Below, in pieces: positions 4,201 through 13,200 of a stretch of DNA of 36,660 nt. The stretch spans positions 3,554,765 to 3,591,424 of the forward strand of contig JAWQFM010000001.1 in NCBI GenBank assembly GCA_033442325.1, written 5' to 3'. Source of the stretch: Salpingoeca rosetta. Its lineage: Eukaryota; Protista; Choanoflagellata. The position numbers were made by a program, and so were the translations under genes. How positions within the stretch are numbered: the first letter of the stretch is position 1; each line of letters begins with the position of its first letter. The notes under the pieces were generated by a model. That model worked only from the letters and a program-made list of their open reading frames with translations, did no database searches and was not told the DNA's origin.

Positions 4201-7200
4201 TTGCTGTGCCCCGCTCTCACGTCTTTGGTCACGTTTGTGTGTTCTGTGTTCAGAGTGGATGCAAACCCTGTCCAAGGACTGGCTCGATCGCCACAAAGAC
4301 AGCCAGGACCATCCTCTCATCCTCTGCGGCCTCAAGATCCCAACGCCCTCTCTCCATGCAGTGAGTCCATGGTGCACGATCTTTGCTTTGTTTCTTTGTT
4401 TGTGTGTTTGTGTGTATATGTGTGTGCGCGTGTGCGTGTGCGTGTGTGTATGTGCAGCAGTCGTGCTTTTGTGTCATCATCGCCATGTGTGCTGACAGTC
4501 CCTATGACCGCCCATCTTCAATCCTGCAGCCGTACACGCTGGACAACTTGGACGAGGTTGAGGAGCGCGAAGTCAAAGATGAGCTGTTCTACGACCTCAT
4601 CTACGGTCTGTCTCGCGCGCGCGCGCGTGTGTGTTTGTGTGTGTGTGTGTGTGTTGTTTTGTTTTGTGTGTGTGTGTGTGTGTGTGTGTGTGTGTGTGTG
4701 TGTGTGTGTTCAAGACCTAGTAATAATCGCAAACGCATTGACTTGAAGAAGCTGTCGGCAGCACGAAGGAGGTGGAGGTGCAGTACACCACGACGACCAG
4801 GCGGTCAGGTCGAGATTCGCCGCGCGCAGTGAGTTTGTTGTCATTTTTGCATGCGTGTGAGCGTGTTGACGGGCCGGGGTGCATGCGCGTGCCCAACAGT
4901 GTATCGTAACGATACTGTTGCTGTGCCCCGCTCTCACGTCTTTGGTCACGTTTGTGTGTTCTGTGTTCAGAGTGGATGCAAACCCTGTCCAAGGACTGGC
5001 TCGATCGCCACAAAGACAGCCAGGACCATCCTCTCATCCTCTGCGGCCTCAAGATCCCAACGCCCTCTCTCCATGCAGTGAGTCCATGGTGCACGATCTT
5101 TGCTTTGTTTCTTTGTTTGTGTGTTTGTGTGTATATGTGTGTGCGCGTGTGCGTGTGCGTGTGTGTATGTGCAGCAGTCGTGCTTTTGTGTCATCATCGC
5201 CATGTGTGCTGACAGTCCCTATGACCGCCCATCTTCAATCCTGCAGCCGTACACGCTGGACAACTTGGACGAGGTTGAGGAGCGCGAAGTCAAAGATGAG
5301 CTGTTCTACGACCTCATCTACGGTCCGTCCTCTCCCTGTGCTCGCTTTTCTTGCTCTTCTCCAGTGGCCCCAGCGTTGTCTGCTTGTTTATCTTGCTGCA
5401 CATACCTCTCTGCTTGCAGTGAGAGAGAGAGAGAGTATGTGTATGGGGGGGGAGGGCATGCTGCATTGACTTCCCCACACTTCGCGCTCACCTGTTTGCC
5501 TGTTTGCCTGCTTGCCTGTTTGCTTGCTTGCTTGCTTGCACACGCACATCTTTCACGCTGTTCAGTTGCCGCCATCATCAAGCTTGGCAACTACATGGCT
5601 GCGAACGTGTCGTACAGCCGCATTGCAGACTGTTTTTTTCTGTTCGCCATTCTCTGGACCACCTGGTTCCACGTCACCATGATCTACAGCAGGCATGCAA
5701 TTCCGGGCTGCGTCGTACTCTGTGAATGTTCGCACGCGCGTTTGTGCGTTTGTGTGTGTGTGTGTGTGTGTGTGTGTGTGTGTGTGTGTGTGTGTGTGTG
5801 GGTGTGTGTGTGTGTGGGTGTGTGTGTGTGTGGGTGTGTGTGTGTGTATGTGTATGTGTGAACGTGTTGGTTGTACAGTTGTGTGTATACTGTGCATGAC
5901 GATTGTCACGATGTATGGCTCATCCATTCCTTGTGATGGCTCCGCGACAGGTTCACGCTGCCGTCGCCGTGGGTGTTCCTGGACTACATGATCATGCTCG
6001 CCACACTCGGCATTGTCCTCCACATCGCCGTCGTCGACACCACAGTCGTACGTTCGCTCATATGGAAACAAAGAGCAACACGAAACGCGCATAGGGTTGA
6101 AACCTGTGGTGTGTGTCTCTGTGTCTGTGTGTGTGTGTGTGTGTGTGTGTGTGTGTGTGTATGTGTGTGTGTGTGTGTGTGTGTGTGTGTGTGTGTGTGT
6201 GTGTGTGTGTGTGTGTGTGGAAACGAATAGGGTCAAGTGCACACTGGTACATGCGAGCATTTCTATCTTCCACACCAATGCATCCATTGCTACCACCACC
6301 GCAACAACCACTTCCACCTTGACCGCCATCCCAGCCAACTCACACCCCTCACCCTCTTCTTCTTTCACAATCGCTCGCGCCTCCTCCTCAGCTGTTTGTG
6401 CCGGAGTCCGCGCGTGCGGACCTGACATTGAATCCGTTTGACCTCGGGGAGGGCGGGCAGGAGGTCAAAGTCGACCAGACCTCGCGTGTGCACGTCGGCG
6501 GCCTCGTCGTGTGTGTCCTTTTCAGTCGTCTCGTCATGATCGCCGTCTACGCCCTCACCTCAAGGTACCGTATGTGTGTGTGTGATGTGTGCGCGCGCAC
6601 GTGTGTGTTGCGTACACCTGTGCTCACCCTTGACTGCGCCTCTTGGTGTTGCCAACCTATCCCGCTCCACGCCGTCCGCTCACGTCTCCATATCTAACTG
6701 TCGCGGCGGCAGATTTGCGGGGAGCGCGCGTGAGCTGTCTCGTGGATATCTCATCAGTCTCCTCCTCTGCACCGTCGTGTGGAGCGTGTCCTTGGCGTGT
6801 GCAATCACCATGCCAAGTTGGCCGCTGAGAAACGTGAGCGGTGGCACGAGGGACCATTGTTGTCTGATGTTGGGTGGAGGCTGTGCTGTGCATAGTTTGG
6901 ATGCAACCACACACACGGTCGACACGATTATGATGCAACGGTTGGTTTGTTTTGCCTTTTCTTCTCACACGTGACCACGCTGTCTCGCTTTTTCTCTCCC
7001 CTGTGCACACGCTTCATCTCCACTGCACCCATGTGTCCTCTTCCCGACAGCACTTTGCACTGTGGGCCGCTGCAATGGCTGGGGAGCTGTTCATGTATGT
7101 GATCGTGGCAGCAAGCCCCCAGCGCCGCGTTGCACTCAACATCTGGCACTCGATTGAGCGCAACATGCTCTGGGTTGTTCTCATTCTCGGTGAATCCCTC

Positions 7201-10200: not shown

Positions 10201-13200
10201 GCCAACTAACATTGTTGTCGTTGTATGCTCGTGTCATCAACAGCGGAGCGGTTCCAGGCGCGCTTTGGGTCTTTCGCTGGCCCCGCACCCATGACCTTGC
10301 GGTGAGCACGCAGCAATGGTCACGCGCAAAAAAATGTTTGTGGTGGGATGGTTGAGATACACATGTACTGTGGTTTGCCATCCCCCCCCCCTCCTCATTA
10401 CCATGACTTCCACGTTTTTGTCTTGCTTGACTGTTACAGGAATGCCCACGCGCAACAGTCTCTCTTCAAAAGCCGGCAGAGTAAGCGTTGATGGATATCA
10501 AAACCCGCACTCTCTTTGCCTTGCCTTCGACGCGTCTGCATATGGTGTTTTGTTTCGCTTTCGCTCGCTGTGCCTGATGACGTTTGACGCGTGTGTACGT
10601 GTGTGCGTACTTCACGTGACAGGAAAATCCCTGATGGCGCGCATGCATTCTGCCAATCTCTACTCCACGTCACGTCATTTCGTCGCAGAGGTGCACCATG
10701 AACTGGCTGCTGCGCACATGCGTGCATTGTGTGTATGCGTGTGTGTGCATTGTGTGTATGCGTGTGTGTGCGTGTGTGTGCGTTATGTGTACGTTATGTG
10801 TACGTTATGTGCGCGTGTGTGCATTGTGTGTATGCGTGTGCGTGTGTGTGTGTGTGTGTGTGTGTGTGTGTGTGCGTGCGTGTGCGCGTGCGTGCGCGCG
10901 CGTGTGTGTGTGTGTGTGCGTTGTTATGTGTACGTTATGTGCGCGTTATGTGTGCAGTTCTCTTGGTTGTGTGTGCTTGTACCATCACGAGCGTGTGGCG
11001 TATCTTGACGCATGAAATTTGCCCGACTTGTTGTTGTCTCAAGATTATCGGCTCGGTGCCGCTGTTCGCATCGCTGCCAGCGCATCGCCTCAACGACGTG
11101 CTGCAGCTCTTCTACCTCCGCAATGTACGGTTTTGCTCGCAAGCAATGACGAAATGCACGCGTGGGCGCGTGTGTGGGTGAGTGGGCTGTCGAGTTGCGG
11201 GGCTGTGCGACTTGAACCACTGTTCAGTGTCACGTTTGCGTTCTCACTCGCTCATATGTGCATGCTCACTCGCAACCCTTTATCCCCGTTCGTGCGTTCG
11301 CAGACGCGTCCTGGCGAGGTGATTGTGCGGAACGGGGAGCCTGCAGACCACTATTACATTGTGGCGCGTGGTCAGTTCAAGAAGACGACACAGCTGAGCC
11401 ACTCCCACGATGAGGTGTGGCACGTTGCCTGGAGGTGCCTTCTTGTGTGTGATGTGCGTCCACGCTGTGCCTTGATTCTACATGCAAATGGTCTCCCTTC
11501 GGATGTTTAATCTTGCAGACACGCGCAAACGCACAATTCAACTCACTCACTCACTCACTCACTCACTCACTCACACACACATACACACATGCACATACAC
11601 ACACATACACACTCACTCATCACTCACATGCATGCACCCACTCACTCACTCACTCACTCACTCACTCACTCACTCACTCAACAAACAACACTTCACTGCC
11701 GCCTCCCAGATTGACATTGGGCAGCTTGGAATTGGGTCGACATTCGGGCTGCAGAGTGTGCTTGCCGCCGCGCCAAACACATCCACGGTGGAATCCATCA
11801 CGGCTGGCAAGTTATGGTGTCTGCATGCAGCGGACATGCGCGCACTGCTGCCGTTTGGCCGCGACCCGGCGCACGGCACGCTCAGGGCCAAGTCTGTTGC
11901 ATGCGCTCGACCCAGCAAGTGAGTCGCTGTGTCACATCATGTACAGTTTGGTGATTTGGGTCGGGTTTTCGAGGAAGAGACAGAGATTGAAGGGAACCAT
12001 GTGTGTGTGTGCGTGCGTGTGTGTGCGTGCATGTGAACATGTGTGCGGTTGTGTATATGTCTGTGCAGTGTGCTGTGACTAATACTGCGCTTGCTGCATT
12101 GACAGATTTGCCATGAAGTCTGACCGCGAGCCACGCAAACGAGTGAGTCCTCATGCTCCCACACACGAACTGCTCATACTCCCCCCCCGGGTTGTGAACA
12201 CCCCATCGTATTCACGTCATTTCATGTTTTTTTTTTTTTCATTTTTGTGTGAACCTGCATTACAGCAGGCCCATCGGACGTACTCTGTCAACAACATGTC
12301 GCTGCTGCAGAGCACAAGCGCAGAGGCAAGCCGCGTCAACGACCCATACACGCGCATGCACGACAGCACAGATGCGCATCAATTGCTCGAACGTGAGTTG
12401 AACACACGCTCTGGTTGTCTGGATGTTGTTGCGTGTTTTGCAGATCACAGCACCTGCCAACACTCCACATGCATACACTGCGTACACCATGTACACGCAC
12501 ACACACACACACACGCTCACGCGTACACATGCACTTACGTTCACACACTTACTCAATGATGTCAGGTGCGCTTGAGGCGGGCTACGAGGAGGATGACAGC
12601 GACGACGCCGCGTCCCAGTACGACGACGACCACGACCGGAACGACTTCAATAAGTCGACGATGTCACTTTCACACACACACGTGCGCGATGATGGCGATT
12701 TGCGGCGGGCGGCGCTGGTGCGGGCGATGTCGATGGACGCAATGGGGCCGAGAAGACGCCAGTCGGCGCCCATGATGCCCGCGGTGCAGGAGCGGGGTGG
12801 AGAGCAGGATGGGTTGGTGCGGCGTGGTGATGCTCGGCATGGTGATGACGACCACGACGATGACGACGATGGTGATGACTGGCAGCATGCGAAGAGAGGC
12901 CGCGATCGCTTGCGACACACGCAGTCGTCACCCATCACGTCTGGCGTGAGGGAGGAAGATGCTGCAATGGCGGAGGGTGAGGTGCTGGAGGCACATGGCT
13001 ATGACGTTGATGGTGAAGAACCACAACAACAACAACAACAACAACAACAACAACAACAACAACAACAACAACAACAACAACAACAACAACAACAACAGCA
13101 GCAGCAGCAGCAGCAGCAGCAGGATGATGAGGACGATTGTGGTTCTGGAAGGGCGAGTGCTGGGAGTCACTCGCATGTGATGTTCAGTGACGATGTTGTG

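Follow-up and report, generated by a model that had tools for sequence, protein, structure and literature searches.

The stretch of DNA analysed here (36,660 nucleotides of the choanoflagellate Salpingoeca rosetta, contig JAWQFM010000001.1, positions 3,554,765 to 3,591,424 of the forward strand; hereafter the window) carries a gene at 1291-13209, on the plus strand, which gene modelling and comparison with orthologues showed to encode, by prediction, one long choanoflagellate membrane protein of ~2050 amino acids (aa). In this protein an LtrA domain is followed by a degenerate cyclic-nucleotide-binding domain (CNBD), and the same architecture was shown to be conserved in at least four other choanoflagellates. 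As a whole, the protein could be a dimer that conducts cations in the manner of TMEM175 and carries a pseudo-CNBD tail with a regulatory role, a proposal whose chances we regard as evenly balanced.

The gene was reconstructed as a single phase-consistent model of 24 exons (1291-13209, plus strand, 2050 aa) without internal stops, using splice phases, donor and acceptor consensus and tblastn searches with orthologues against the window copy, in which positions 7328-7415 were masked. From the N- to the C-terminus the model comprises a low-complexity N-terminus, a complete LtrA domain (Pfam PF06772; aa ~990-1450, with ~12 transmembrane (TM) helices), an acidic and basic linker, a single PKA/PKG-type cyclic nucleoside monophosphate (cNMP)-binding fold (aa ~1649-1770) and a polyQ tail. 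An earlier note on this DNA had placed LtrA and CNBD motifs in one phase-consistent frame, and all the motifs it named were found on the plus strand, in collinear exons.

The LtrA and cNMP-binding profile matches that the note had expected were also recovered. The window was scored as separate stop-free exon pieces on the plus strand. The LtrA profile PF06772 matched 5586-5741 (profile 23-58, 15.7 bits), 7030-7233 (profile 146-199, 26.3 bits) and 7930-8070 (profile 253-291, 13.6 bits), and the cNMP_binding profile PF00027 matched 11301-11420 (profile 5-34, 26.2 bits) and 11695-11919 (profile 41-86, 21.4 bits). Every piece alone scored below the gathering score of its family (31.9 bits for LtrA, 27.5 bits for cNMP_binding); the pieces are collinear, and their sums, 55.6 bits for LtrA and 47.6 bits for cNMP_binding, exceed these cut-offs. 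In two LtrA alignments the family-invariant pattern was E-x-F-x-D in TM1, H..ER, LGE and G.K, and the window protein keeps all of these residues, with ELFYD, HSIER, LILGES and GVGMK at the invariant columns.

A phmmer search with exon E8, which encodes the LtrA core, against 1.84 billion representatives returned 16 proteins, including orthologues. Four orthologues, the closest among the full-length matches, carry both domains:

P0007, Choanoeca flexa: complete transcriptome open reading frame (ORF), 967 aa; LtrA 111.6 bits, cNMP_binding 40.2 bits
P0017, EukProt record: complete transcriptome ORF, 1029 aa; LtrA 108.3 bits, cNMP_binding 50.5 bits
P0010, Salpingoeca infusionum: complete transcriptome ORF, 1483 aa; LtrA 102.6 bits, cNMP_binding 18.0 bits (below the 27.5-bit cut-off)
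P0005, Monosiga brevicollis (XP_001745478.1, UniProt A9UYE5): genome model, 1334 aa; LtrA 91.2 bits, cNMP_binding 29.9 bits

In the three transcriptome proteins the LtrA match (102.6-111.6 bits) extends over profile positions 4-345. Since LtrA and cNMP_binding lie together on the complete ORFs of these three orthologues, the fusion is one gene, as the earlier note had proposed. The window model is collinear with all four orthologues from a conserved pre-LtrA motif through the last TM helix and an ERFxxRFGxFxG motif to the CNBD.

Predicted fold and assembly of the LtrA domain

LtrA is named after the Listeria monocytogenes low temperature requirement A protein. No solved structure for the family was matched by sequence search. 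We modelled the LtrA domain of the C. flexa orthologue P0007 (residues 105-560, 54-row alignment) with AlphaFold2 (AF2). The model reached a predicted local distance difference test score (pLDDT) of 81.8 and a predicted TM-score (pTM) of 0.80; it contains 11 long helices and the start of a twelfth. The earlier note had suggested a structural comparison with known channels. In a Foldseek search against the Protein Data Bank, five of the top six matches were TMEM175 (human 7lf6_A and others; E = 4.5e-3, probability 1.00, TM-score 0.45-0.50); this structural likeness was not accompanied by sequence-profile homology. A structure match in the ESM Atlas was to a bacterial TMEM175 cluster and covered the second half of the LtrA model, and a search of the Atlas by features gave no result. 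It is predicted that LtrA folds as two repeats of six helices (2 x 6 TM), as TMEM175 does.

TMEM175 is a homodimer with two 6-TM repeats in each chain (PMC7141809, PMC10216561), and its pore is lined by TM1 and TM7 (PMC7141809). When two copies of the P0007 LtrA domain were predicted together, the ipSAE score was 0.58 against 0.00 for the best control, a pass that may reflect memory of the solved TMEM175 dimers; a two-copy prediction shows likeness, not binding. Of the proteins solved as same-chain pairs, 21 of 30 attained the ipSAE mark, compared with none of 23 solved as single chains; among eukaryotes the figures were 17 of 29 pairs and none of 30 single chains. Contact agreement in the dimer runs was at least 56% and the partner pLDDT at least 62. 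The predicted interface is formed by TM1 (9-24, with the ELFYDLIFVAAIIK motif), TM3, TM7 (228-244, from behind H..ER to beyond LGE) and TM8. In this arrangement the most conserved helices of the family would lie on the predicted two-fold axis, where the pore of TMEM175 sits. The predicted LtrA homodimer, assembled via TM1 and TM7, would be similar in this respect to the lysosomal K+/H+ channel TMEM175 (human 6W8N, 7LF6; bacterial 5VRE, 6HD8). In the hhalign alignment TM1 was also in register (ELFYDLIFVaA of LtrA with EAFSDGVLAII of TMEM175), so that the E-x-F-x-D of LtrA aligns with EAFSD.

Several results weigh against a TMEM175-like function, besides the possible memory effect and the fact that both predictions, of fold and of dimer, were made for the C. 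flexa orthologue, not for the window protein. The Pfam TMEM175 profile (PF06736) did not match any of nine LtrA domains at E <= 10, and hhalign comparison of the LtrA alignment with 17 bacterial TMEM175 ORFs gave an E of 0.28, no better than the reversed control. LtrA does not retain, as such, the RxxxFSD motif or the Ile constriction of TMEM175: TM1 has only K/W-x-x-x-F-Y/F-D, and TM7 carries HxxER...LGE, not RxxxFSD. The invariant buried charges of LtrA (E, R, E, K) would equally suit a transporter or an enzyme, and we know of no LtrA protein for which a transported substrate has been shown by experiment. A profile-profile test for an internal LtrA repeat was not significant either. Because the profile tests were not significant, our claim is limited to a shared fold and a predicted common assembly and does not extend to homology or family membership; given the lack of profile signal, the shared fold may have been reached by convergence, or the likeness may be too remote to carry function. 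The same genome also contains homologues of TMEM175 itself (PF06736), at C8:1119417-1119689 (L023, 79.8 bits) and C1:285651-285821 (L024, 28.1 bits), so LtrA proteins and TMEM175 coexist in it. The window protein differs from TMEM175 in its long N-terminus and CNBD tail and has no detectable sequence homology to it.

A second line of evidence comes from bacteria. A profile search revealed more than 40 bacterial clusters of ~700 aa with an N-terminal LtrA domain followed by Ion_trans_2, IRK and IRK_C, the partner of LtrA being a complete Kir-type K+ channel, cytosolic domain included (P0019-P0064). In a genome scan we found 16 full-length, species-level LtrA-Kir loci (L004-L019), and the hosts of the fusion include Myxococcota, Acanthopleuribacter, Bdellovibrionales, a Flavobacteriaceae metagenome-assembled genome and other groups. 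In a maximum-likelihood (ML) tree the LtrA domains of these proteins form one clade, separate from the choanoflagellate fusion clade; as judged from sequence comparison, the bacterial protein represents an independent event, the second in which LtrA was joined to parts of ion channels. As in the window protein, the module attached to the N-terminal LtrA domain in the LtrA-KirBac fusions (e.g. P0019 from Sandaracinaceae, ~700 aa) includes a cytosolic regulatory domain; these fusions differ in being bacterial and in that the module is a complete channel, not a CNBD. By gene-fusion logic, the joining of LtrA to a Kir channel links LtrA to cation conduction or its control. TMEM175 was not found in five bacterial genomes with LtrA-Kir fusions, and we draw no inference from this. 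In one protein of the P0019-P0064 set, P0061, LtrA is fused to zf-UBP.

On the strength of the models, the likelihood that the LtrA domain is a cation (K+/H+) conductance seems to us to fall at or slightly short of an even one; the LtrA homodimer would then conduct cations (K+ and/or H+) in a TMEM175-like way. It is possible, if doubtful, that LtrA is instead a secondary transporter or a membrane enzyme that resembles TMEM175 only in the arrangement of its helices, and that the CNBD-like tail regulates that activity. The missing sequence-level homology to TMEM175 would be explained in this way, invariant charged residues within TM helices (H, E, R, E, K) are common in carriers and enzymes, and CNBDs regulate transporters too, SLC9C1 being a transporter regulated by its CNBD. 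Two points count against this alternative: the conserved TM1 and TM7 would lie on the axis of the predicted dimer, as they do in TMEM175, and LtrA is repeatedly fused to K+ channels in bacteria.

Compared with stand-alone LtrA proteins (PF06772), likeness is seen in the full-length profile match of the orthologues and in the retained invariant residues. The window protein differs from them in that it is encoded by a eukaryotic multi-exon gene and has a 940-aa low-complexity N-terminus, an additional soluble helical insert ahead of the last TM helix and the C-terminal CNBD.

The degenerate CNBD and its linker

The CNBD was assigned on the basis of hidden Markov model and phmmer matches. By sequence it is nearest to the domains of PKG and of PKA regulatory subunits (E from 3e-16 to 5e-13) and further from the channel domains of MloK1 (E 5e-6) and KCNH1 (E 4e-3). 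The AF2 model of the CNBD, made from a six-row alignment, had a pLDDT of 39.8 and was too poor for use, which counts against our interpretation.

The canonical cassette F-G-E...P-R-[ST]-A is represented in the window by FGLQSVLAAAPNTSTV, which was aligned to FGERALLYDEPRTAS of PKG. Three orthologues have FGQL...PSSST, PCTTT and PSSTS, and the S. infusionum cassette is more divergent still. The Glu is replaced by Q or L and the Arg by N, S or C, so that all five members are without the nucleotide-contacting residues; the earlier note had rightly described the CNBD as degenerate. Hallmarks of the beta-roll (G-E-P-x-D, the FG of the cassette and LW.LHR) are retained in the five species. The last TM helix is separated from the CNBD by ~200 residues, acidic and then basic, of low complexity and of variable length among orthologues, and neither a helical C-linker nor any Pfam domain was found between the membrane domain and the CNBD.

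With a cassette lacking Glu and Arg and a long, variable, low-complexity linker, direct nucleotide gating in the style of HCN/CNG channels seems unlikely. The CNG/HCN-type ligand or voltage regulation considered in the earlier note is therefore doubtful, the more so as the C-linker is missing and the CNBD is nearest to PKG/PKA. It is improbable that the CNBD is functional in the sense that it binds cAMP, cGMP or another small ligand non-canonically and directly gates the membrane domain. The conservation of the beta-roll in five species would favour such a role, as would CRP/FNR-type CNB folds, which bind other ligands, whereas the substituted cassette of all members and the variable tether without a C-linker argue against it.

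We read the CNBD as a putative cyclic-nucleotide-binding (CNB)-homology domain, as in KCNH channels, in which the cassette likewise lacks the nucleotide-contacting residues; it would not bind cyclic nucleotides canonically. A multi-pass membrane domain followed by a cytosolic C-terminal CNB fold is common to the window protein and to HCN/CNG, KCNH, MloK1 and SLC9C1. These channels and exchangers differ from it in that their membrane domains are unrelated to that of the window protein, which has no P-loop pore, no voltage sensor and no C-linker. From the collinearity with the topology of TMEM175 and the 12 TM helices we infer that the tail would be cytosolic, and it is rather probable that it regulates without canonical cNMP binding. 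It would modulate gating, trafficking or partner binding via the non-canonical CNB-homology domain, for which KCNH channels offer a precedent, and basic Ser/Thr sites immediately ahead of the CNBD might offer a further route of regulation.

These sites belong to a basic stretch rich in Ser and Thr that precedes the CNBD by 15-30 residues (window 10440-10690, exons E17-E18). It contains RQRKS in the window and RRKS..RSIS, RKQT..RNLT and RHQT..RRLS in the orthologues. By analogy, its position recalls the inhibitor/phospho-site ahead of CNB-A in PKA regulatory subunits.

Gene model and its support

The window, eukaryotic DNA whose introns contain TG microsatellites, comes from an assembly of 55.4 Mb in 68 contigs; the stretch 7328-7415 is a TG repeat inside an intron. 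The features of the model are as follows:

E1, 1291-4111, plus strand: 941-aa His/Asp/Ser-rich low-complexity N-terminus; inferred first coding exon
E2, 4971-5077, plus strand: conserved pre-LtrA motif (...LCGLKIPTPSLHA); identical copy at 4254-4360; supported by tblastn with P0007, P0017 and P0005 and by the L046 junction
E3, 5247-5322, plus strand: start of the LtrA domain with the TM1 motif ELFYDLIY; identical copy at 4530-4605
E4, 5566-5692, plus strand: GC donor; with E5, TM1-TM3 of LtrA; Pfam LtrA profile 23-58
E5, 5951-6047, plus strand: with E4, TM1-TM3 of LtrA; YSR/F junction
E6, 6392-6564, plus strand: with E7, loop and TM4-TM5; start set by comparison with L046 and P0010
E7, 6713-6833, plus strand: with E6, loop and TM4-TM5
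E8, 7051-7239, plus strand: TM6-TM7 of the LtrA core with HSIERN...LILGES, in which H, E, R, G and E are family-invariant; Pfam 26.3 bits
E9-E14, 7596-7711, 7923-8051, 8317-8402, 8583-8705, 8869-8948 and 9090-9166, plus strand: TM8-TM12 including GVGMK; from tblastn, splice phases and alignment
E15, 9313-9767, plus strand: end of the last TM helix, then the acidic (DEEAEEAEESDEE) and basic (RSRRRRKK) disordered linker, whose length varies among orthologues
E16, 10244-10301, plus strand: E16-E18 encode the conserved ERFxxRFGxFxG motif, the basic Ser/Thr-rich stretch and the N-terminal helix of the CNBD
E17, 10440-10480, plus strand: small exon of the E16-E18 block
E18, 10623-10690, plus strand: small exon of the E16-E18 block
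E19-E21, 11044-11124, 11304-11414 and 11710-11918, plus strand: cNMP-binding fold with the degenerate cassette; Pfam 26.2 and 21.4 bits; aligned to orthologues and PKG
E22-E24, 12106-12142, 12266-12392 and 12566-13209, plus strand: acidic/polyQ C-terminal tail ending DDVVIV and a stop; inferred, no homology support
Exact tandem duplication, 4074-4613 = 4791-5330 (offset 717), plus strand: holds the 3' end of E1, E2 and E3

The earlier note had given the gene as 4530-11918. The gene is real, and its limits are wider. Position 4530 is the start of the first copy of E3 in the tandem duplication, and the copy adjoining the downstream exons is that at 5247-5322. The apparent stop at the other end, the TGA after 11918, is part of a consensus GTGAGT donor at 11919, and the frame runs on through three more in-phase exons to a stop at 13209; long C-terminal tails are also present in the orthologues. 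A Met at 5203-5205 was considered as the start of the protein and was ruled out by conserved coding sequence upstream of it in the orthologues and in L046.

L046 is a 2.3-kb contig of the European Nucleotide Archive from a close relative (63-88% identity), in which equivalents of E1-E6 and of E8-E9 are continuous ORFs, thus confirming the junctions of these exons, including the GC-AG one. E1 is based on a 950-aa open frame that ends at a GTGAGT donor in phase 1, compatible with the E2 acceptor, and in L046 a comparable low-complexity region is continuous in one ORF with the equivalent of E2. The PTPSLHA of the E2 motif is common to all orthologues, and L046 and all orthologues share the E3-E4 junction (DLIY/VAAII). 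The introns are of the GT-AG type, with the single exception of that between E4 and E5 (5693/5950), which is GC-AG (CAG/GCATGC...ACAG/G); its YSR/F junction was confirmed by the orthologues and L046, and the YSRFTLPSPW spanning it is kept in P0007, P0017, P0005 and L046.

The copies of the tandem duplication diverge 6-7 bases beyond the E3 donor. Since E2 and E3 together begin and finish in phase 1, inclusion of both copies would stay in frame; the duplication may be real or an assembly artefact. His, Asp and Asn are extremely abundant in E1, which includes HHHHH and DDDD runs, and E24 contains a run of ~38 Gln. Neither sequence is conserved among orthologues, and both low-complexity tails are typical of their kind.

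Eight runs from the same organism, taken as RNA by guess, contained 0.26-0.30 of the sampled 31-mers of 4900-12100, which is consistent, indirectly, with the 0.268 expected from the model for 31-mers wholly within exons. It is very improbable that the LtrA and CNBD parts are separate adjoining genes joined by an artefact of exon picking: although the boundaries of E16-E18 and the E15 donor were derived from phase and homology only, other choanoflagellates have both domains in the same order, in three complete transcriptome ORFs and in a genome model, the window aligns with the orthologues across the ERFxxRFGxFxG linker motif into the CNBD, and the exon share agrees with the word shares of the runs.

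In comparison with the transcriptome orthologues, the public gene model of P0005 is apparently in part mispredicted: there is an intron-like insert after FLFSR, a TM9-TM11 segment is missing, a 100-aa insert lies within the CNBD, and an N-terminal TPR may come from a neighbouring gene. We also noticed that the orthologues P0007, P0005, P0010 and P0017 end in S-x-V/L (SVV, SVV, SFV and SVL, respectively), as class I PDZ ligands do. The end of the window model is VIV, so either the ligand class is different or the last exon was mis-called.

Origin and significance of the fusion

The fused gene is present once in the genome, alongside a single stand-alone LtrA paralogue on contig 6; a word search with the latter returned only three proteins, all of them stand-alone LtrAs. 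The ML tree, built from 39 LtrA domains, places the four fused ones together in a single clade (98/99), which is sister to stand-alone eukaryotic LtrAs including the paralogue from this genome, and the bacterial LtrAs are separated by a 100/99 branch. No CNBD was found by Pfam in the tails of the other eukaryotic LtrAs tested, even at E <= 1. The tree and the CNBD-free relatives show, for the choanoflagellates sampled, a single origin: the fusion arose once, after a duplication and before these species diverged.

The earlier note knew of no description of this architecture. In the literature searched we found nothing relevant on LtrA with a CNBD or with TMEM175, and in this respect the claim stands; the Monosiga member A9UYE5 is, on the other hand, already public under the automatic name 'Cyclic nucleotide-binding domain-containing protein'. 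The LtrA-CNBD architecture is thus public in databases but unstudied, and neither the joining of a TMEM175-fold membrane domain to a CNB-homology tail nor the structural link between LtrA and TMEM175 appears to have been described in the literature searched.

A wider proposal, which we make tentatively and hold to be rather unlikely, is that the whole LtrA family of bacteria, fungi and protists consists of TMEM175-type dimeric K+/H+ channels missed by sequence methods. Choanoflagellates would then have formed, independently, a CNBD-tailed cation channel from this non-P-loop pore, which myxobacteria would have joined to a Kir channel.

LtrA is a large family without a known mechanism. The whole-length structural match to TMEM175, the predicted TM1/TM7 axis and the two independent fusions to channel-regulatory parts provide a concrete hypothesis of LtrA function that can be tested by patch-clamp. 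As choanoflagellates are among the closest living relatives of animals, the gene bears on the assembly of CNBD-tailed membrane proteins before animals arose. If the conductance is real, LtrA would be a second family with the pore design of TMEM175.

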